Shown here in pieces: positions 4,975 through 62,310 of a stretch of 64,000 nucleotides of DNA; the stretch's first letter is position 1; every line of letters starts with the position of its first letter. Origin of the DNA: Asterias rubens (Eukaryota); contig NC_047068.1 of the NCBI RefSeq assembly GCF_902459465.1, positions 1,674,001-1,738,000 of the forward strand, read 5' to 3'. The notes beneath the pieces were generated by a model, which was not told the DNA's origin, made no database searches, and worked only from the letters and a program-made list of their open reading frames with translations. A program made the translations under genes and the position numbers.

Positions 4975-5035
4975 GCCTTCGAGATGACTCTGCTAGGGAC
5001 GAAATGTCAGGCCATTAACTATTTTGTCAAACAAA
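4975..5035 (+). mobile_element. Penelope-type hammerhead-like motif, family 2
   Basis: GCCT-TCGAGAT-GACTC(tgcta)GGGAC-GAAATGTC-AGGC; related copies at 754-790 (minus) and 2054-2075 (3' half only). Confidence 0.5.
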
Positions 5036-5914
5036 AATTATCACAACACAAAATACTATTGGTCTTTTAGCACGAGTCAATTTGGGATTCCCGCCCCCCC
5101 CCCCCCGAGACAGCGGACTTGTCTATGTTGTAACAAATCTAGCAGATAAGCGACCTTGCCTGGCCACTCAAACAAGTTATGACAGTCTGAATAAGACTGT
5201 GAATGATGCCAGCTGATTGTTCAAATTCAAATATGTAAAAAAAAAGATCTGAAATACATTATTGTCAGATATGTTTCTCGTATTGTGCATCCACATTCAA
5301 GGATTATTTTTCCTTCGTGGACATAACCGCTCCAGACTTCTGGCGAAATATTCGCAGCTTAGCTTTATTATAGGATTAATACAAGAGACCGGCTACAAAA
5401 AACCAAAGGTATACTTTGCCTTTAACTGTGACAAACCTATAACAGCATTCAAAATTGCATTCAACAGGTCGAGAAATAACGAAATTTATATTTGTTAACA
5501 AAAAATACAATGGTGTGTGAGATCTGCCAGACGGTACAAAAGAGGATCCTCAAATGGATTGATACTCCTTCAGCCAACGAAAACTAATTTCCCCTGAGGG
5601 GAAACCGAAATCGAAATAAAGCGTACATCCGCATTCCCTTTTGTACTTTTCCTCAGAATTTGTAGAAAAAAAACGGATCGCCCAACCCTTTTTAATACTA
5701 CAAATTAACTCTGTACATTACAATCAGGCAAGAAATATACTGTAAAAGACAATTCCGTCGGCTCGTTTGACATTTTCTAGATTAAAGACAAGGTAGAAGT
5801 CGCAGGCGGAACACTCGAGTATAATTATATTGGGATGTACACAGCATAAGAGATTGTTGTCGGAGCGAACGACTCTAAGCACCGAAGTGCGCTCGCCAAC
5901 GCACGTAAAATAAT

Positions 5915-7020
5915 CTATGTAGCCAGAGATGCTTAAATGTACCCCTATCCAGGTTCAGACTTTGTTTAGGTACTCGATTGGGGTATGTAGCCAGAGACCA
6001 CATGTACCTCCCCGAACTGTATCAAGGTCTCGCATTATTGAACCTAAACCTCAACCCTAAATGTACCCCACTTAGGGGCAGGTTACGTTTGGGTACACAT
6101 TTAGGGTATGTAACCAGACATGTACCTAAACACTGTATGTAGCCCGATGTGTATCAAGGTAGCCTCAACAGTGAATCTAAACCTCAACCCTACATTGAGT
6201 ACCCAGATAATATGTGATCAGATAACCGTTACGTACATGATTTGGGTATTTAGCCAGATATACATGTACGTCGGCCCTCTATGTAATCCACATGTTTATG
6301 CAGGCATTTAGCCACAGGATACCCAAATGTACCCGTGCTTATGAATATAGCTACAACCTTAGCGGAAAACAATACCTCAATGCAGCACCAACCCGGAAAC
6401 TAAATATAGCCAGATTCAGGTTGGGCTACATTTACGCACAAGATTTGGCCATGAAGCCAGAAATCTTAAATTACCTCGGCCTTAAAGGCAGTGGACACTA
6501 TTGGTTATTTCGAGACCTCAGATTTAGAATTTGAAGTCTCGAAATCAAGCATCTGAAAGCACAAAACTTCGTGTGACAAGGGCGTTTCTTCTTTCATTAT
6601 TATCTCGCAAATTCGATGACCGATTGAGCTCAAATTTTCACAGGTTTGTTATTTCATGCATATGATGAGATACAGCAAGTGAGAAGGGTGGTCTTTGACA
6701 ATTACCAGTTTAATAAAGCCCGAACCCTCTGAATAAACGTAGCTCCAACCTTGTACTTAACAGTTATTACAGACTTCAGTACAGCATCACCATGTAACTT
6801 AATGTAGACGGAATTAGGTTTGGGCTACGTTCAGGTATAATGTCTGGGCATGTTGCAAGAGACGTCGAGCTGATTAAGCCTTAAATAAAGTCTCAACCGT
6901 TCATACATGTAGCCACAACCTTGTTTCGAAATACAGCCCAGACTTAAATGTAGCTACAACCTCGTACTTGTATAGCCCGATTTAGATACAATATTGTGGC
7001 TACATTGGTTCAGGGCTAAG
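5915..7020. repeat. Complex degenerate tandem/inverted repeat region split by a MITE
   Basis: Recurrent ATGTAGCC, ATGTACCC and AACCTAAACCTCAACCCT modules at 5915-6480 and 6715-7020. Confidence 0.7.
6482..6713 (+). mobile_element. Kolobok-like MITE family A, internally deleted
   Basis: Left TIR joined directly to the internal hairpin; right end partly deleted. Confidence 0.8.
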
Positions 7021-9200: not shown

Positions 9201-10522
9201 TCCATTCATGTATTGTCAACCTTTATTCAGTCACTCAATTACATCCAAGTTACATGACATTTATTTAGTTCCCTCCTCGGCTAAACATCAAAACAAAATC
9301 GTTAAAATGATCTCCTTCATAAACTTTCTGGCCAGTGGTTTTTAGTGTTAATTAACTCTCTCCCTTATGGACACATCCATTATGCAACGTGATACCGGCC
9401 TTGACAAACAAAGAGAAAGAAGTCGAATCCTCAGAAATCCTACACCTGTTATACTTTATCTTATACAGCATTGCACTTACATCATTCTCTTTCATTTCTG
9501 TTTGATTTATGTGCATTTATTTAAAACTCATTGGTGCAATGTCAATTGACTCTATTTGTCAAACGTCATTCGCAAATTAATGACTCTGGAAATCCAACTA
9601 AAAAATATGTTAAAAAGTAGATCAACGGTATTATTACAAACTAATTAGTGTGCTAATTACATACTGGTTGAAGCTTTCTAATAAAAGCAGTTGTTTATTA
9701 TTGTAAATGCTGGCAGTAAAGCATGCATTTATATTTCCGGTTAAGAACAATCTTCTTCTTTTGCGATATTTCCTAGTAATTGGTTTTTCCCAACGTTGCT
9801 GTACAACCCTGGCAACCAACCCTTTATTTGATCCTCAATTCAATATACAGACATTATAAATCATGTTTATAGCTCCAGAAACTAGCAGTAAAAATGCCGT
9901 TGCCATGCACGCCACATGGTCGTTTATTCTGAAAATATTTAAATTGGGCTCCCTTGTTCTTTTTTTGTTTAAAAATTATATGCCTTTTGGATGTGAGCGA
10001 AATTTTTAAGAAACAAGATTGTGAAGGAACACGTACACTTATTGTAATATTATTTATTCTGTATTTAATCGACCTTTGTTTGGTATTTTTTTCCAACTGG
10101 GCCATTCCATTACAATTTTTTTTTTAAATGGTTGTATTTTATGCTAAAAAATTACAGATTTCTTTTGTTTCAGCCATGACCACATGGTTGATTGGATAGG
10201 ACTAAAAGTTCATCAGGACCTACAACAAGTACAGCAATTATTATCAAAATCTTAAGACATGAGGTAAACAAGTGCGTTGGTCTAATGACCCAAATTGGAT
10301 TTTGATGTAGCTGAGGACGAAATACATTCAACCGATATCTAGCCCGATTCTCCACTCGAACAACTTAAAAAATTTACCTAAATTTCGGGTCCCAGGACAC
10401 CCCACAAAACTGTTAGTCAGATTGACCTGGAAATAGTTATAAAAAAATGAGACTTTGATCTCTAAATCAGCTTTTTTTCTTTGTATCTTTGACACAGACT
10501 CTTGGTCCTACTAAATACAGCT

Positions 10523-10756
10523 AAACTTTGCGGTACCCGCTGCCAAAACATATGATTCGAACTTCCTCTAGCCACCGGGCAACCTCGGTAGTCTAGTTGG
10601 CAAGACACTGCTCTAGAATTGCAAGGGTCGTGAGGTCGAATCCCACCCGAGTAACATGGACTCGGGAAAGTACTGAGTATACAGTGCTAACATACATCGG
10701 TGTATGGGTAAAAACCAGAATTAATATTCTTTATCCCCGATGCAAATTTAACATCT
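10523..10756 (+). mobile_element. tRNA-cored structured repeat (SINE-like), solo full-length copy
   Basis: Leader AACTTTGCGGTACCCGCTGCC...GATTCGAAC, tRNA-like core 10584-10651 (A-box TAGTCTAGTTGG, B-box GGTCGAATCC), body AACTCGGGAAAGTACTGAGTATACAGTGCTAAC, 3' end CCCCGATGCAAATTTAACATCT; homologous to the array at 12.7-13.5 kb. Confidence 0.8.
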
Positions 10757-12719
10757 CTTAGGTATATAATGTCACAACTTTGGTTTGTTTCTGTCTCTTT
10801 CTGTTACCCTCTGATCACATCAGTACTGCAGCCAGTAGAGCCATACAAAAATCGTTATCTTGGGTATTGATTTGAGTATCATCTAACATGTGGGTTTCTT
10901 ATTTTAAACTATGTTTAAATTCCACCCAAACTATGTAAAAACAAGTTCTATCTGTCAAAATTAATGTCATAACTTGCCGGCCAACCTTTCACTGAGAAAA
11001 CAAAAATGATTTTCGACCCCTTTGATTCTCTTCAGTTTCTATGTTATTCCCATTGCAAATCTGCAATCCAGCCTTGCTCTTGTGTATGTTACCAATATTA
11101 TTTAGTCCACACGTTCGAGTGCGTCCCACCCAAGGCGTTAATTTCGGGAAGCTATGTATCCTAACCATGACCCACACTGGTAAAAACTGTGTGTACCGGT
11201 ACTCAACCCAGTTTCTAATGCAGGTGTTACACACTGCAAATGCAAACAATACTGAGGAAATCCTATGTCTGATCGAAATATATATATATACAGTTAAATC
11301 AAACTAGCCCCCCCCCCCCCCCCCCGAGGTTGCGAAAAACTCGTTACCAACCCGGGGATGAAATATGAGGAAGCTTTTTCTTCTCCTTCACCTTTGCTTG
11401 AGCAAAGCAGGAACAAACATTCGCAAAATGACCTATGTTTGAGGAATTGTTTATTTAAGACGTCACTGGAAGGGCCAAGTTAGCAAAGTACAGAGAATTC
11501 TAGAACGCCCTGAGGAAATTTGGAAAGTAGGGCAGAAGAACGGTTTGATAGAGCGCTCTGCTTTGGGCTGAATCTCAAAAATAAATTTGTATATTTTAAA
11601 AACTGGTCGCACAAAAATATCTTACAAAATCATGATTAAAAATTGTCAGGTTTCTCTGGGATTTGTCAACAACTTCTTGTGGCAGAACTTAATGTTGTCT
11701 TCTTTTTAAGATTTGTTTTCATTTTCTTGCTGGTGTAGATGTGGTATTTATTTATATTTATTTGTTTTGATGATTTCTTAAATTCTTAGTTGTTTATTTC
11801 TTGTTTGTTTGAAGGAACTGTAAAAGTTTAAGATCGATCGGCCATCTGGGTGACGAGAGAATAGTGAAAAACCGATTACAAATTTTACATTGCATCAATG
11901 TCAAAGCAAAAATGAATAAAACGCTCACTGAGCGATAAACTCCAAACGCGAAATATGAAATTTCAGTTTTATGTAAATTTATGATCTTCACAATTTTTGT
12001 TTCTCACAAATTTTGTAACGTTCCTTTAATGTTTAGCCTTTGAGAAAGACTGGTATTAACTAATTTCTGTCGCAAACTTCTGTTGAAATTCTTCACTAGG
12101 CATAACATGTAAATTCGAACAGTGACGATCTTTGGGTGGTTTTATAATTCATAACTAAACCATTTATATGGTATTAATATATTTGTATATTCTGAAATAT
12201 TATTGATCCCCAAATAATCTTTAAAATAGTCGTCTATAACTAAATAACTGACTTAAAGTCACACCATTTTGATGACGAATTTATCTTACTCTAATGTTAA
12301 TGTTGATTTTGTTTCATCAAGGTGTTAAAAATCGACGGCATAGGTTTTGTTGACGCTGTTTCGGAAGTCCCTCGAATGTGTTTTAGATGTTGCCGCTACA
12401 GCTGTATCAATAATACTTGGAGTCAACGACGATCACTGTGTACATGATGTTGACCATGTACAAGTCACATACAGTGTATGTAGGTGAAAACAAATAAGAA
12501 CCACTTGGAGACTCTAAAAACACAGCCAGCCTTCACTATGTTGTCATTTGATCAACCGGAATCAATATTTTCAAAACAGCTGTGCATAGAATGGCGTCTA
12601 AGTTGGGAATCTTATGGGCTTTAACAAACAGAATGATTAACTGCATTTTTACAATGAGCGATGACACTTTACATGTACTTTTTATTAGCAATGTGTTATT
12701 GCATGTAGGTCTATTACAC

Positions 12720-13530
12720 TCCCTCTGCTAAAATATAGGATTCGAACACAGCATCTATAGCTACCAGGCAATCTCGGCGGTCTAGTTGTAAGACAGCTGC
12801 TGCTCTAGATTGACAAAGCTGATGGGTTCGAATCCAACCCGAATTGCCGTGGAAATGTTTTAACAGAACTCGGGAAAGTACTGAGTGCTTACACACATTA
12901 GTGTGAGGGTAAAATCAAATTAATCCCAATGTAAATTCAACATCTATTAAACCTTTGCGGTACCATGCTCCTAAAACATAGGATTCGAACTGCATCTAGC
13001 TACCGGACTAAAAAGGTTGCCTAAGACATCTGCTCTAGACTGCCAAAGGTCATGGGTTCGGATCCCACCCGAGCAAAATGCATGTGATTTGTTTTCACCG
13101 AACTCGGGGAAAGTACTGATTCGAACTGCCTCTAGCTACCGGGCAATCGCGGTTGTCTAGGTGGTAATACCTTGCTCTAGATTGGCAACATTCGTGGGTT
13201 CGAACCTCACCTGAGTAATATGCCTGTGATGTTTTGTTCACAGAACTCGGGTAAGTACTGAGTATACAGTACTAACACACATCGGTGTATGGGTAAACCA
13301 AAACATATATTCTTTATCCCAGATGTCAATTCAACATCGTTGCAGTACCCACTGCTTAAACAGGATTCGAACTACCTCTAGCTACTTGGTGGTCTAATTG
13401 GTGAGACATCTTATCTAAATTGGCAAAGGTCAGGGGTTCGAATCCCACCCGAGTAATAATGCCTGTGATTGTTTTCACATAACTCGGGAAAATTCTGACT
13501 ATACACAGTGCTTAAAAACGTCGATGTAGG
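12720..13530 (+). mobile_element. Head-to-tail tandem array of four tRNA-cored repeat units
   Basis: Units at about 12720-12947, 12949-13118 (3' truncated), 13119-13338 (leader truncated) and 13339-13530, each with GGTTCG(A/G)A(T/C)C and AACTCGGG motifs. Confidence 0.85.
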
Positions 13531-14361
13531 CCATAGAGTAAAAGCAAACAGTAATAAGGGAATAACGAGTTCTTCAACAAAAGGTTTATGCACACCCACG
13601 TGACGCGCTCTCCACCAATAGGAGTAGAGAAACTGTCTGGGGTATTTATGAATACATATTTGAGATTATAGATTCACAGTTAGGCTCTCATACTCAATAG
13701 GCCTTGGGTAAAGATTGTATTTTAATAATTACAATACAATCCCTTAACACGAAACAGGAGTGAGGACGTTTGTTAATTTGATTATAAAATTAGGTCCACC
13801 GGCATGTTTTGAAAGCGAGTTAAAATGGAAAAGGGGGTTTTCTCTTTCACTGGGGAATAATTGTTGTTGAAGGAAGGCATTGAATAGCATTAATTTGTTT
13901 GCATTTATGAAGTCGAGTTTTATATTTTTCATCACAGGACAGGCAATTGTTCATTTCAATTTTAATTTTAAGGGAGAAAGTGTTCTTCTGTTTAACGTCA
14001 AAATTCGCTTTAGCTAGCTTCCTGCTATAAACGCAATAGGTACACTTTAATGCAATCGAACGAAGTCTAGTCTTGCTGTGTGAGTGTAAATGGTATCCAT
14101 TAATACCGAACTTGATACGTGATATACGCACTATTTATCCGAGGCTTTGCCGCTAGACCACTCAATATTATGGAAATGGGTTTCGTTATGTACTTTCTCA
14201 GCCAAAAGGCATTTTCACATTGGTAGTGTTACTGTATACGGTCTTCTATATGTTTTGTTTGTCATAAAATTAATTCCTATCTAAGCCTAGTTTGAAGTGC
14301 TCTATAAATTCTAATTATTGAATTATTGATGATACACATATTTCCCAAAATAATTGATTGA

Positions 14362-15542: not shown

Positions 15543-15620
15543 GCATCTCTTCCCAACACGACTTCTTGAATCGTCAGTCAGTTGGAATATCGCAGCTGCC
15601 ATAGCTGGATTCCCTTGAAT

Positions 15621-15955
15621 AGATGTTAAATTTGCATCGGGGGAAAAGAAAAAAATTTTATATATATTTTTTTTAACTCTACACCGATGTGTGTTAGCTC
15701 ATGGATTCCTTTTATTGACTGGAAAGCCAAACATGAAGGGGATGTACGAACGGGTATGAGCTAATCGTATAATAATTTAATCATTATGTCTTAAGGTGAA
15801 TGTTCTTGGTGGGATTGGTGGTTTTGTTTTAACAAAACATCAAATAGCGTTCCGATGATTTGTAATTAGTGTGTTGTGCATAGATGTACAATAGATATTA
15901 AATTTACATCAGGAATAAAGAATATTAGTTTGGGTTTGACCCTTACACCGATGGT
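15621..15955 (-). mobile_element. Two 3'-end fragments of the tRNA-cored repeat
   Basis: AGATGTTAAATTTGCATCGGGG...ACACCGATGTGTGTTAGC (15621-15710) and AGATATTAAATTTACATCAGG...ACACCGATG (15894-15955) are reverse complements of the element 3' end. Confidence 0.7.
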
Positions 15956-25157: not shown

Positions 25158-25475
25158 CACGATACGTCCAAAGTTATCATGTACTTACACGATAAAGTAT
25201 TGCGTGATCACGATACGTCCAAAGTTATCATGTACTTACATGATAAAGTATTGCGTGATCACGATACGTCCAAAGTTATCATGTACTTACACGATAAAGT
25301 ATTGCGTGATCACGATACGTCCAAAGTTATCATGTACTTACATGATAAAGTATTGCGTGATCGTGTACGTACACGATAAAGTATTGCGTGGTCATGTACG
25401 TGCACAATAACATATTGCGTGATCATGTACGTACGCGATACTTTATCGTGTACGTATCGTGTACGTACACGATAA
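25158..25475. repeat. 51-bp minisatellite (4 full units) with 31-bp degenerate subunits
   Basis: Unit CACGATACGTCCAAAGTTATCATGTACTTACAYGATAAAGTATTGCGTGAT starting at 25158, 25209, 25260 and 25311. Confidence 0.95.
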
Positions 25476-26574
25476 GAGTAATTTATTATTCATGTGGCAG
25501 CAAGTACACGTTAGTAAATATTTACCGAAATTTACTTCATTAAGTATATGTTTGAGTCGAAATGACTTGTCAAAAGTAAATTAAACATAGTTCAATAAAA
25601 GTGAATCAAATTTGATTGAATCGAATTAAATTTAAAAAAAAAAAAAATAAGTTTGTTGTACCTATATCCTTTACGAAATATTTGTAAAAGGGTTTAATTA
25701 AATGTGATTGTGAAAGTACCAACACTTTTATTTGAAGATGAAAAGAATGCAATCAAGTATGAGATGAACGTGATTTTGAAGGGAATTGACCGCAACTCAT
25801 TACGAATTTGAGTTGACATAAAATTTGAATTATGTCACTTAATAATAAAAGGTCTTTATATTTGTACATCTAATCAAAACAAATCAATAATGACAATATA
25901 TTCTTCGAAGTTGCAAAACGTTATATACAAGTAACTTTTTTACAAATCACTTCTCACAATAATACCATTCCCTCCTATGCCATTTGGCAGGAACGCCCAA
26001 CGTGTTATTCAATTGAACTTTTCGATTGATTGGTTGGGTCAGGCCAAATGTTTAAAGTCACAATAAATCTTTCTCTTCCCCGTAAACTGATGAAATGATA
26101 TCGACGTTTTTATACATCTACAACTGTAATGAGCGAACGGGTAAACTTGAAGTGCTGTTTTCCATCAATCATTCGGAAAGAAGTTTGAATAGAATTTGTC
26201 AGTGGAGCATATATTCCCAGCTGGCAATTTAATTTGACGATGCTAAATTGACGTGGACCATGAATCACTTTGGCTCATTCGACAGTATCACATTACCAGG
26301 CCAGCCTCGAACATTTATGAAGTGCAGACAAAACTGTTAACAGTTTACATTGTTTTAACTACTGTGAAGATTGATGGTGGCGGCAACTATTAAGCATCAG
26401 AATGAAGCTGTCTGCTTAAGGCGTTAAAATAAAGTCGTTAACGCGATATTTATGTGTTATTCATGTAAGGGAGGTGTGGTCCGAGACCCTGGGTGCATGT
26501 AATCGTAAACAATCAAGTACAACCGGTCACAGAGAAGATTTGAAGAATTGGAACGGTTCAAATGCATGTTGTTT

Positions 26575-26702
26575 GGGTTAACCCTCGCACGATGTGTTAG
26601 CACCGTATGCTCAGTACTTTCCTGAGTTATGTGAGAGAAAAAAAATCACAGGCATATTACTATGGTGGGATTCGAACATAACACCTTTGCCAGTCTAGAG
26701 CA
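26575..26702 (-). mobile_element. 5'-truncated tRNA-cored repeat
   Basis: Reverse complement has GCTCTAGACTGGCAAAGG...TTCGAATCCCACC...AACTCAGGAAAGTACTGAG. Confidence 0.75.
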
Positions 26703-37827: not shown

Positions 37828-37960
37828 TTTTCCAAGGGTTCGAATCCCACCTGAGTAATATGCCCGACTTTTTCAAAGAACTCGGTAAAGTACTAAGTAT
37901 GGTGCAAGAGCAAAACCAAACAATATTCTTATTCATCCCCGATGCAAATTAAACATCTAT
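37828..37960 (+). mobile_element. 5'-truncated tRNA-cored repeat
   Basis: GGGTTCGAATCCCACCTGAGTAATATGCC...AACTCGGTAAAGTACT...CCCCGATGCAAATTAAACATCT. Confidence 0.75.
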
Positions 37961-39451: not shown

Positions 39452-40616
39452 ATTGGACTATAGATACTGCATTAAGGATATACACGAACCAACTCTATAA
39501 TAACGTGTACGTGTCCAGCAATATTCGCAATATTAAACATAAAGTATATTACTCGTAATAACGGTTGCTTCCAGATATCAGGATAGGGACACTGTGTTCA
39601 CTGGACCGTTATAAGTTATACGCACACATGTAATGATACTTGTCTGTCATATTTCGTTGAATACAATGCAGAATTTGAATAATATATTAATATTATGCAG
39701 CGTGTATATCTAGCATGTTGAAACGTTATTACCACTTTGACTTAGTGCTGCATGGCTGATTTACAATGACGCTTCATCATTAGGGAGTGTTTTCAAGAAA
39801 CAACGGAAAGAGTGGAAATGAGAAACACTTGTTGAAGATTACATCAACTGTGAAGGCTAGTCTTTTACAATTACCAATAGTGTCCACTGCCTTTAAACAG
39901 TTGTATTTATGTTATGTATTTATGTATTTTTTATTATGTTTGACAATCATCCTAGAGGCATGACATAAACCACAGAAATAAAAACCAATGAAATATTTCA
40001 TTTTAGCTTTTATGAAAAACCAGGTTCGCAAAAGGGTGTGACATACATAACCATATTTTGCCAAAGACTTAACTCTATACATCAACTTTCCAAACGAACT
40101 CAATTTGTGAAATTGCGCTTAAATTTGTTGTAATCAAACCCCGGAAGACAGAATTTCATTCGGGAACTAAAAATGTATTAATATATCTACAATAATATTA
40201 CAGCACTCAGGGTAGGCTAAACTCCCATCAGTTTTTATATTTTATGGTGACTACCGATATACAAAGTTTGCCTGTGGCAAGAAACTCAAATGTTGTTATA
40301 CTTGAGCAGTGTGCTAAAAGTCCCCGTCAGAATTAAGACATTTTACAGGGCTGGAATTTAACACTTGACCACAAGCCCGAGGCCAGTGATTTTAGTCCCG
40401 GGTCAGTTAGCCAATGGCAGGACAAGTCCAGTAGTCTTATGTTTATTTTTGATATTTTTTTTTTCAACCGAATAATAACACCCTACTGTGTAAATATCTT
40501 TAATAAGACAAAAGTGATAATGAACATTTGGCGTTGAGTCTATAGTAAAAATCAAGTCTGTTGAACATCGAAGTATAAGAAAATACTTATACGGCGAATG
40601 AAATCAATCGTTTATA

Positions 40617-40715
40617 GATGGTAGTTTTACATCGGGGCTGAAGAATATACTTTTGTTTTACCCTTACATCGATGTGTAAGCACTTATCCAGTACTTTCCA
40701 GAGTTCTGTGAAAAC
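40617..40715 (-). mobile_element. 3' fragment of the tRNA-cored repeat
   Basis: AGATGG...TTTACATCGGGG...TTTACCCTTACATCGATGTGT...CAGTACTTTCCAGAGTTCTGTGAAAA. Confidence 0.7.
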
Positions 40716-41592
40716 ATGTTAAGCTAAATATTATCTATTATGGCGCTTGTTCAAAATCAAAACAGTTTACAATGTTCAACTCTGTAAACGGTTCTTTCTC
40801 GTTACGATTTTTGTCTTCGGGTCCGGTAAAAAAAAAATGGAGCTATAAAGCTCTGCGGTCTTATGGAACTGTACACTACATTTGAGCCGTGAGTTTTACC
40901 AGTCTATATAGTTGCAGTGTTACAGCGCGAGTAGAAGTAATAATTGTCGTACTTGGTAGCAGGCACAAAGATAATTATACCACGGCCAATCTCCTGTGCA
41001 TGCTTATTGGTGATTGTCTAAAAGCATTCCTTTTAATAAAACCAGGAATTCGCCTATTTACAAGACCGTCGCTAGGTAACCACAACAATGCATTAGAACA
41101 TAAACAAAATGTCAAGTGGTAAGCCGTGCAATACACGCAGTGCTAATTAATACTGCTGTATTTAAATTACACCAGTATTACGTCTGCAGTGGTCAATAAC
41201 ATACATAATGCGTTGTAGAGTAATGGCCTGTCAGAAATAGTAGACCTCAGTCCAATAATTTACAAGTTGTCAAATTGTACATAGTATTATCTTATAGCGA
41301 TTGTTTAAACGGTATTTTTTCCAGTAAAATAAACTGATTAGGCCAATTCTTATAGCCTATGGCTATGGCTATTACATTGGCCTAAGACATTATCAACCAC
41401 ATTATTCACAATACATGATAAGCTATACTGTTTAAAACCAGCTCTCATTTTACACATACTGCTTGATATGGTAGCGAAGCATGATTTATACGTGAGGAAA
41501 CGATTGTCCGTCAATCTATGTTCAACAGTTCAACGAAACATTCTCCCTAAATTGACAAAAGTTAACATTATTTCCAAAATGAACGAACACTA

Positions 41593-42360: not shown

Positions 42361-42665
42361 TGTCATTGGACAATGGAAATTTACATACATGTAGGGTTGT
42401 ACAGCGAATATCATCGTTACTTTTTTCGATATTGGACTGTGGACATTCACATGGGTTTGTACAGTGTCCAATGTCCAATATCGATGTACGAGGTAGGCAT
42501 CCACTGACAAATATATGTGAATATCCAATGTCCAATATTGATGTACAAGGTAGACATTCACTGTAGAAACATATGTGAGTGGCCAATGTCCAATATTGAT
42601 GTACGAGGTAGACATTCACTGTACAAACCTATGTGAATGTCCAATGTCCAATATCCAATGTCACA
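42361..42665. repeat. 57-58-bp tandem array with inverted partial unit
   Basis: CCAATGTCCAATAT.GATGTAC units start at 42468, 42525, 42583 and 42641; 42428-42466 is an inverted unit fragment. Confidence 0.9.
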
Positions 42666-49404: not shown

Positions 49405-49500
49405 TATATTATTTGGTTTTTATCCTTACATCGATCAGTGTATCACTGTATACTCAGTACCAAATAATTTTCTTTATCACCGATGCAAATTTAACATCTA
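49405..49500. mobile_element. tRNA-cored repeat 3' part with internal inversion
   Basis: Minus-oriented body fragment (49405-49460) fused to a plus-oriented 3' end (49462-49500). Confidence 0.7.
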
Positions 49501-49914
49501 TTAAAACATTGATTATCTGCTACATCAGTGGTTTTCAAACTATTAAAATGGACACAAACAAAATGTACACATGATTGTGGCTGTGCATACCAGTAAACGC
49601 GTGAGCCTCGACAAACAAGCAATTTCACGCATCGGAATAAATCGATTCATTACGCAAATAATCCACAATGAATAAATTGCCCAGCATTGTATAAAATATC
49701 ACATAACCCTATAGCATATCTTAGACGCTCAGATTGAAAAGTTCATTGGATTTAGCTGGAAACAGTTTACATCGAGGTCAGTCAAGTACCCAATCTAATT
49801 GCATGGCCTTCCGTGGAATACAAGTACGTTCATGGTTCGCATAAAGATACAAATAAGAAGTCTGATTTTGAAGGAGCTATTTTCCATAAAACTCATTAGG
49901 AGGTTAAAGGATAA

Positions 49915-61620: not shown

Positions 61621-62042
61621 GTAAGTGAACTTTACTGTTCTATCAGATACTGCATCAGTGACTTTTTCTAGAAAAAATAACAATTGCCACATTCAAAGGA
61701 TAAATGTAAAGTTGCCATTTTTATTTTGGTGTACTTGGCAATCAGTGATGCCACAAAGGGGCTTTTCTTTAACTACCCCCCCCCCCAAAAAAAAAAAACC
61801 CACCAATACAAACAAACAAACAACAGCAACTGAAGTTTAGTTTTTTTTTAAAGATATTTCATCAATGATCGACTGAATTTTGGTGTTGGTGGCCTCGATG
61901 GTTCTAAGCATACAAGAGAGATCCCGTAATGAGTGAAGCAAATGTAACTGACAAAGTACTGGTGTAATTTGCTCTAACCGATGTATTCAGTAACATTTCT
62001 GGCAGCAGCGTTTTGTATCCATAAAGTTGTTCACCCCGGAAG

Positions 62043-62310
62043 TAGCAGTTTCAGCAACATTACCATGTACCTTAACTTGATTCATAGAGACTAAGCAAAC
62101 CAGAAATAGCAGTTTCAGCAACATAACCATACCTTAACTTGATTCATAAAGACTAAGCAAACCAGAAATAGCAGTTTCAGCAACATTACCAAAGCTAAGC
62201 TATACCTTCTCTTTATTCAAAGATATTAAGTACACAAGAAGCCTGTTGTTTCAGCAACATTACCAAAAGTTATACATGTACCTTATCTTGATTCATAGAG
62301 ATTAATCACA
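62043..62310. repeat. ~63-bp degenerate tandem repeat in STUB1 intron 4
   Basis: TAGCAGTTTCAGCAACATTACC...CCTTAACTTGATTCATA units starting at about 62043, 62107, 62169 and 62246. Confidence 0.85.

Follow-up and report, generated by a model that had tools for sequence, protein, structure and literature searches.

Copies in the window and the 258-bp family

Within a 64,000-nucleotide stretch of the genome of the starfish Asterias rubens (RefSeq assembly GCF_902459465.1, contig NC_047068.1, positions 1,674,001 to 1,738,000 of the forward strand; hereafter the window), we focused on a short, non-coding repeat that carries a tRNA-like module and is present as a solo copy, as a head-to-tail array and as truncated fragments. 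An earlier reading, made from the letters of the window alone (the sequence-only reading), had described it as a tRNA-cored retroelement with a conserved upstream leader and had proposed that it propagates through multimeric or circular RNA. From 29 near-complete genomic copies we built a consensus unit of 258 bp, and all unit positions given below refer to this consensus. The copies in the window are the following:

10528-10760, plus strand: solo copy, unit 1-253, with its leader at 10528-10581 and a tail that runs as far as AACATCT-CTTA
10582-10654, plus strand: the solo copy's tRNA-like module, which contains A and B boxes (Rfam RF00005, 35.1 bits, E 7.7e-5)
12721-12949, plus strand: array unit 1, unit 9-253, with a remnant of an upstream tail before it
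12955-13119, plus strand: array unit 2, unit 1-169, without tail
13118-13338, plus strand: array unit 3, unit 27-248, without the start of the leader
13340-13528, plus strand: array unit 4, unit 1-197, without tail
13383-13456, plus strand: tRNA-like module of array unit 4 (Rfam tRNA, 28.9 bits)
15618-15698, minus strand: 5'-truncated copy, unit 179-252
15887-15953, minus strand: 5'-truncated copy, unit 188-255
26593-26702, minus strand: internal fragment, unit 82-187
37836-37960, plus strand: old 5'-truncated copy that begins in the T arm, unit 105-251
40614-40717, minus strand: 5'-truncated copy, unit 140-251
49406-49503, both strands: small head-to-head complex, minus arm unit 163-220 and plus arm unit 207-253

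The solo copy, which the sequence-only reading had placed at 10523-10756, is therefore present with borders that differ by a few bases. The same reading had counted four tandem units at 12720-13530 and six or more truncated copies elsewhere. We found four units at 12721-13528, none of them intact, and located six fragments within the window. The array is old, with 73-86% identity to the consensus. ARAGORN called no tRNA within the window.

The unit begins with a 54-nt leader (1-54), followed by a 73-nt tRNA-like module (55-127) and a trailer hairpin (132-152) in which CCTGTGA and TCACAGG enclose a loop formed by a T6 run. A tail of about 105 nt ends in AACATCT-ATTATA at about position 255; in arrays, TCG and the leader of the next unit come after it, and the junction from unit to unit is constant (ATTATATCG joined directly to TTGCGG). 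Young genomic copies are 95-100% identical to the consensus. In these copies the module scores 43-49 bits against the Rfam tRNA model, and ARAGORN reports a 74-nt Ser(AGA)-like tRNA. With module scores of 35-49 bits and duplications around the insertions (see below), the description of a tRNA-cored retroelement holds.

Pattern counts over the whole 417.6-Mb assembly, for which the reversed-pattern controls were all 0, returned 5,355 tails (18-mer, at most 1 mismatch) and 1,172 tail-to-leader junctions (22-mer, at most 2 mismatches), and they indicate a family of about 5,000-6,000 units. A 22-mer spanning the leader/tRNA boundary had 3,662 matches, compared with 5,762 for a 22-mer in the anticodon region, and therefore most tRNA-like parts carry the leader. 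The conserved leader, which had been estimated at about 60 nt, measures 54 nt and is joined to the tRNA-like part genome-wide, and both the boundary counts and the map of 5' ends indicate that most copies do not begin at the tRNA head without it. Arrays reach at least nine units at 258-260 bp spacing (G000:C2:22614250-22616084), with an inverted arm adjoining. The largest complex among the matches listed, C2:22614250-22616987, has eight minus-strand junctions spaced by about 259 bp and, about 100 bp later, four plus-strand junctions, and is a head-to-head pair of long arrays. Elsewhere, the leader/tRNA-boundary and anticodon probes matched at 79 or 158 bp spacing (G000:C2:24513183-24514545 and C2:24840975-24842153; also C1:585385-585485). 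These 79/158-bp-period arrays are minisatellites derived from the leader/tRNA front part of the family.

In the trailer hairpin, the consensus has a run of T4-T7 at unit 146-151, which 55 of 80 units retain; the remaining 25 have deletions there. Unit 128-156 (10655-10665 in the solo copy of the window) is a deletion hot spot whose borders differ among these 25 units, and reverse transcriptase may skip across the stem. We considered a short subfamily lacking the T run and rejected it because the deletion borders around the hairpin vary from copy to copy. Shared deletions were found in two small lineages only: the window solo copy, which has lost the trailer hairpin through a 20-nt deletion, has its deletion border in common with locus L003, and L002 groups with L004. 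We likewise rejected the idea that the leader arose from the tRNA part by direct or inverted duplication, as their alignment score of 21 (shuffles, 18.2 +/- 3.5) was reached by 103 of 500 shuffles.

Insertion scars and the sites where copying starts

We annotated 75 insertion complexes in 338 kb of DNA made up of the window, 56 loci fetched by unit or tail, and 30 loci of a resident Penelope-like element (PLE); the 30 PLE loci contained no copy of the 258-bp family. End positions were taken from BLAST ends and are precise to a few bases. Simple copies (L012, L020, L023, L046) are immediately flanked by exact target-site duplications of 8-13 bp. Tandem complexes (L002, L004, L025, L028, L060) and head-to-head complexes (L005, L019, L026, L032, L039, L045, L051, L053 and window 49406-49503) have duplications of the same length directly at their outer ends. 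The window complex has one outer end at about 220 and the other at about 253, and is flanked by the 9-bp duplication AACATTGAT. Because one duplication surrounds the whole of a tandem or inverted complex, each complex represents one reverse-transcription event. We conclude that target-primed reverse transcription produced each insertion in a single event.

The 5' ends occur at many positions along the unit and frequently within an upstream unit, and in about 75 insertions none was found at unit 26-60. Approximately two thirds of full units have a truncated upstream unit before them (an arrangement known as a pseudo-long terminal repeat, or pseudo-LTR), with the constant junction between the two and one duplication around both. 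About 22-29% of tails continue into another unit behind the constant junction. The sequence-only reading had suggested that sequence upstream of the tRNA head is copied by way of a multi-unit template, and the constant junctions, together with the lack of a 5' pile-up at the tRNA head, support this. The ends are not evenly placed: in a sample selected by tails, 9 of 26 fall at unit 101-130 (binomial p 0.002), which comprises the T arm and the 3' border of the tRNA-like part. The clustered ends include those of truncated copies and the inner joints of inverted complexes. This cluster of 5' ends could reflect a block to reverse transcription by a folded or modified tRNA-like structure, or an RNA end of the RNase Z type. 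In a same-array test for rolling-circle copying, derived bases were common to the units of one array in 10.7% of cases versus 5.3% in controls, a comparison based on few variants.

At the other side of the insertions, terminal units mostly end in ATTA or ATTATA, also in CTTA or CTTATA, and rarely a few bases further in or out. The 3' ends define two fixed sites 35 nt apart: a major one at about 255 and a minor one at about 219, which accounts for approximately one fifth of arm ends. The minor site covers unit 212-228 and is mostly 219/220, directly after AAATTAATA and before a T. One simple copy (L020) ends at 219/220 with a clean duplication. When we compared the two outer ends of head-to-head complexes, 13 of 15 paired an end at 249-258 with one at 212-223 and none had two ends of one kind, a split that is not expected if the ends were independent (binomial p 2e-5 to 5e-4). 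The target duplications are unrelated in sequence among insertions, and therefore the fixed inner start site cannot be explained by microhomology with the target.

These features can be compared with published work on PLEs. With a purified PLE, Frangieh et al. (PMC11167929) found that the template is a multi-copy mRNA, that reverse transcription starts internally at two adjacent sites which are not homologous to the cut DNA and which define a 30-40 bp tail, that both DNA strands are cut and extended, and that hammerhead mutants still insert in vitro. Craig et al. (PMC8557442) described non-autonomous PLEs with head-to-tail multicopy insertions and reported that non-LTR elements, in their target-primed reverse transcription, do not show such a combination. 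An inverted 5'-truncated partner with a 30-40 bp tail at one end only, as in both studies, is what those 13 head-to-head complexes show. The anatomy of the 258-bp family fits the published PLE signature point by point, and the published mechanism explains it better than a new propagation mode does.

The copies form one short, non-coding starfish retroposon family. Because the PLE mechanism matches, we consider it probable that this family inserts by a PLE-type mechanism and is most likely a non-autonomous parasite of the reverse transcriptase and GIY-YIG endonuclease of a PLE. The template would be an RNA of at least two units, most likely produced by RNA polymerase II (Pol II) transcription through genomic tandem copies. 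Reverse transcription would start inside this multi-unit RNA at sites chosen by the protein, and both target strands could be extended. The leader would then be the stretch located 3' of the start site in the preceding unit, rather than sequence upstream of a start site for RNA polymerase III (Pol III). With a multi-unit template the leader is simply copied, and no special explanation for it is needed. Of the retrozyme-like propagation suggested by the sequence-only reading, the architecture is supported, while the ribozyme-like and circular-RNA parts are not (see below).

Candidate enzyme and candidate template

A scan for GIY-YIG domains identified one young PLE family with at least 100 copies, 91-99% alike, and reading frames of up to 921-930 amino acids, of which the 921-amino-acid frame contains RVT_1 and GIY-YIG domains. 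This resident PLE carries a hammerhead core, CTGAAGA...GAAA (a mini-hammerhead), about 40 nt from its 3' end. It ends in ...CATTATAT, with the terminal heptamer ATTATAT in common with the 258-bp unit, and it is flanked by duplications of 10-15 bp. An enzyme of the PLE type is thus at hand in this genome, which speaks for the PLE reading.

Several observations weigh against the PLE-dependent retroposon that we favor. BLAST and Smith-Waterman comparisons of the unit with the 560-nt 3' region of the PLE and with the 30 PLE loci revealed no similarity beyond ATTATAT, and the local alignment scores of 19-23 are close to those of shuffles (19.4 +/- 2.2). Target choice differs: PLE flanks are 82% A+T and often (TA)n, versus 65% for the flanks of the 258-bp family (background 61%), and TATA or ATAT is present in 15 of 27 PLE flanks compared with 11 of 62 flanks of the 258-bp family (Fisher p 7e-4). 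All 27 PLE copies scored end at one site, and there is no second site 35 nt away. Finally, no chimeras between the PLE and the 258-bp family occur in the DNA analysed, and three RNA runs (described below) contain no discrete transcript of the family.

Some further observations concern the resident PLE itself. A second tandem family that bears a tRNA part has a 316-bp unit in which a T run comes after a tRNA-Asn(GTT)-like module; it is present at L065:2372-2900 (1.3 tandem units), L089:2385-2640 and L009:2060-2300. In L065 and L089 it lies directly after PLE 3' ends, inside (TA)n tracts. The T arm is its sole match to the 258-bp family. The 316-bp family suits the resident PLE better than the 258-bp family does. 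In addition, three PLE copies (L068, L076 and L082, with 3' flanks at about 2330-2420) lie in the same minisatellite of about 22 bp, of the GGAGCAAAACC-TATATATAA type, and the duplication in L076 is 17 bp; this suggests a favored target repeat that contains TATA. At L082:2295-2365 and at other PLE loci, an ATG lies just 5' of the hammerhead core, and the frame that begins there continues across the core as far as the 3' end. By analogy with an anole PLE, the PLE frame may start at the hammerhead, with the start site of reverse transcription inside that frame.

The alternative that fares best is an ordinary tRNA-derived short interspersed nuclear element (SINE) mobilized by a long interspersed nuclear element (LINE), whose reverse transcriptase, stringent or relaxed, would start at ATTATA or at the A-rich sequence near 219; frequent jumps between SINE RNAs, off the 5' end of one and onto the 3' end of the next, would yield the tandems and twin priming the inversions. 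Duplications of 8-13 bp and a near-random target composition fit LINEs of the endonuclease type, and the unit is richest in A around the second start site. The mismatch with the resident PLE, in both sequence and target preference, also speaks for a LINE. However, jumping from a defined RNA 5' end requires a pile-up of 5' ends at the start of the unit, and there is none; the 22-29% of tails that precede another unit at a constant junction also speak against this alternative. The inner priming site is fixed despite varied targets, and twin priming by microhomology predicts otherwise. Moreover, the combination has not been seen with non-LTR elements (PMC8557442), and no LINE with the tail of the unit was found in the 338 kb. 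Taken together, we regard mobilization by a LINE as unlikely.

The module has A and B boxes, and a T run about 20 nt 3' of the tRNA-like part is conserved. Pol III terminates at T runs, and a transcript begun at the tRNA head would stop there. A Pol III transcript would therefore be about 95 nt long and would contain neither the tail nor its own leader, which points to Pol II read-through of tandem copies as the source of the template. Given the conserved T4-T7 run about 20 nt downstream, the A and B boxes are unlikely to drive the template RNA. We infer that the module and the T run are a captured complete Pol III gene or pre-tRNA.

We examined RNA reads from three raw short-read runs carrying the same species label. 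The whole unit is deeply covered, equally in both mate orientations, and depth climbs toward the 3' part, like the profile of genomic copies. Between 62 and 85% of the reads run on into unrelated flanks, and in the three runs there are no discrete RNA starts or ends inside the unit, including at the tRNA borders. We conclude that the 258-bp family is present in RNA libraries mainly as a passenger; the reads show its presence there, but no transcript of its own. Reads that span the unit-to-unit junction do occur, as is expected because the genome contains about 1,170 such junctions. Nothing in the reads points to the circular RNA that had been proposed, nor do they argue against it or against a small Pol III product.

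The consensus unit folds at -87.4 kcal/mol, compared with -59.8 +/- 5.2 for shuffles. In the minimum-free-energy fold the leader is paired to both the T loop and the 5' acceptor/D side, and the 3' acceptor strand pairs with sequence after the T run; therefore the cloverleaf is excluded in that fold. The pairings of the leader with T loop and acceptor that had been proposed are thus present in the consensus and in the fold, as are CCCGAGT/ACTCGGG around CCTGTGA/TCACAGG, and AGTACTG/CAGTGCT. None of them gains support from covariation, which was detected in 0 of 36 predicted pairs, an expected result because the copies are young and neutral. The alternative conformations put forward by the same reading likewise lack covariation support. 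We treat the secondary structure of the unit as an unproven model with pairings derived from energy.

A bolder and rather improbable idea is that the tRNA-like module is the working part of a ribozyme-free counterpart of retrozymes, recognized within multi-unit transcripts by the tRNA machinery (RNase P, RNase Z and modification enzymes) or by the telomerase-like RNA-binding domain of the PLE reverse transcriptase. The two flanking hairpins, which sequester the acceptor strands of the module, would then act as a switch that lets the RNA adopt either a template fold or a tRNA fold.

In a strictly retrozyme-like cycle, unit-length RNA would be released from multimers and closed into circles, which reverse transcriptase would copy in rolling-circle fashion; RNase P and RNase Z, acting on the tRNA-like module, would replace the hammerhead. 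Unit size, low G+C, tandem form and duplications resemble those of animal retrozymes (PMC7229834), arrays of at least nine units are found, and the cluster of 5' ends at the T arm and 3' border (9 of 26 within 30 nt, p 0.002) suggests that, within the template, the module adopts a fold or undergoes processing. The ribozyme itself is missing. Permissive Rfam scans (E<=1) of window 10000-14000 and of four loci with young copies gave tRNA-like modules and no ribozyme, with the caveat that Rfam also missed the mini-hammerhead of the resident PLE. A search for the CUGANGA...GAAA core, which does find the core of the PLE, found none on either strand of a consensus dimer, in agreement with the absence of a canonical core noted earlier by eye. 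RNase P and RNase Z leave a 5'-phosphate and a 3'-OH, and such ends are not substrates of RtcB, the ligase that closes retrozyme RNA. In addition, no discrete RNA ends were seen at the tRNA borders, genomic junctions account for the junction reads, and the 3' ends of insertions, at about 255 and 219, lie away from the tRNA borders. We therefore consider this cycle very improbable.

In the weakest alternative, the arrays would have formed in the DNA itself, through unequal crossing-over, as a SINE-derived satellite or as cargo of a Helitron or a miniature inverted-repeat transposable element (MITE), rather than through retroposition of multimers. SINE-derived tandem arrays are known (PMC10702118), the head-only 79/158-bp arrays at G000:C2:24513183-24514545 fit such an origin, and very long arrays could have grown in this way after insertion. 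This alternative is all but contradicted by dozens of independent loci at which the junction is identical, the first unit is truncated to a variable extent and a single duplication encloses the complex, where a SINE-derived satellite should have neither a duplication around the whole array nor scars of retroposition, and by the regular 255/219 asymmetry of the inverted complexes.

Other features of the DNA analysed are unrelated to the family. The window contains minisatellites at 25158-25480, 42465-42654 and 62039-62191 (51/31-bp, 58-bp and 62-bp units, respectively) and a poly(C) tract of 18-19 nt at 11308-11326. A long hairpin with a perfect stem at L004:3115-3224, which scored as plant MIR859/MIR841 far under the gathering threshold, is probably an unrelated inverted-repeat element.

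Comparison with known systems

Non-autonomous partners of PLEs are so far known mainly as hammerhead-bearing retrozymes, and SINEs are regarded as parasites of LINEs whose 5' end is set by the Pol III start. If the PLE-dependent reading of the 258-bp family is true, a hammerhead is unnecessary for such spread, in line with the insertion of hammerhead mutants in vitro (PMC11167929), and not all short retroposons that bear a tRNA part are LINE-dependent SINEs. If the module also acts as a tRNA mimic, the family would stand for a class of PLE parasites that center on mimics of this kind. The result also matters for annotation, because elements of this sort can readily be mistaken for SINEs, satellites or MITEs, and two alternative 3' ends together with inverted pairs confuse repeat libraries. 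A unit of 258 nt with two mapped start sites is also a compact natural substrate for studies of how PLE-type enzymes choose an internal start site.

Among known systems, the non-autonomous Chlamys PLEs of Chlamydomonas (MRC1 and others; PMC8557442) are similar in being short, non-coding units that form head-to-tail pseudo-LTR multicopies, and in having inverted 5'-truncated partners, an optional end extension of 30-40 bp and target-site duplications. They differ in that their 3' ends are common with those of an autonomous PLE, whereas the 258-bp family has only a heptamer in common with the resident PLE. The literature searched reports no tRNA-like Pol III module in Chlamys-type elements, and the 258-bp family carries one.

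Animal non-LTR retrozymes (PMC7229834; bioRxiv 10.64898/2026.07.22.740005) consist of tandem 150-450 bp units that carry a type I hammerhead, and they are believed to rely on PLEs. The range of dimers to long multimers, the unit size, low G+C, duplications longer than 4 bp and the presumed PLE dependence are all shared with the 258-bp family. In contrast, each retrozyme unit has its type I hammerhead and gives rise to circular RNA, whereas the 258-bp family has a tRNA-like module and no hammerhead core was found in it.

Like SINE2/tRNA SINEs, the family is small, exists in thousands of copies, contains a tRNA-related module with A and B boxes, and shows duplications and 5' truncation. In SINE2 elements the tRNA head forms the 5' end, full-length copies begin at a discrete site about 10 nt before the A box, and no internal terminator keeps Pol III from transcribing the whole element. 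Unlike in those elements, the tRNA part is internal (unit 55-127) and has a T run after it, the 5' ends are not discrete, there is neither a poly(A) nor a microsatellite tail, and about 22-29% of tails continue into another unit. With respect to the 3' tail that SINE2 elements share with a LINE, the family ends in ATTA(TA) with no poly(A), and no LINE with the same tail is present in 338 kb.

The resident PLE, lastly, resembles the family in its duplications (10-15 versus 8-13 bp), terminal ATTATAT, recent activity, and tandem and inverted fragments, and differs from it in A+T-rich targets of the (TA)n type, a single 3' end, a hammerhead core and an otherwise dissimilar sequence. The limited literature searched describes no PLE-dependent element bearing a tRNA part, which is no proof of absence. 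Taken together, we conclude that the 258-bp family is best filed as a non-autonomous retroposon that combines a PLE-type insertion signature with a tRNA-like Pol III module.

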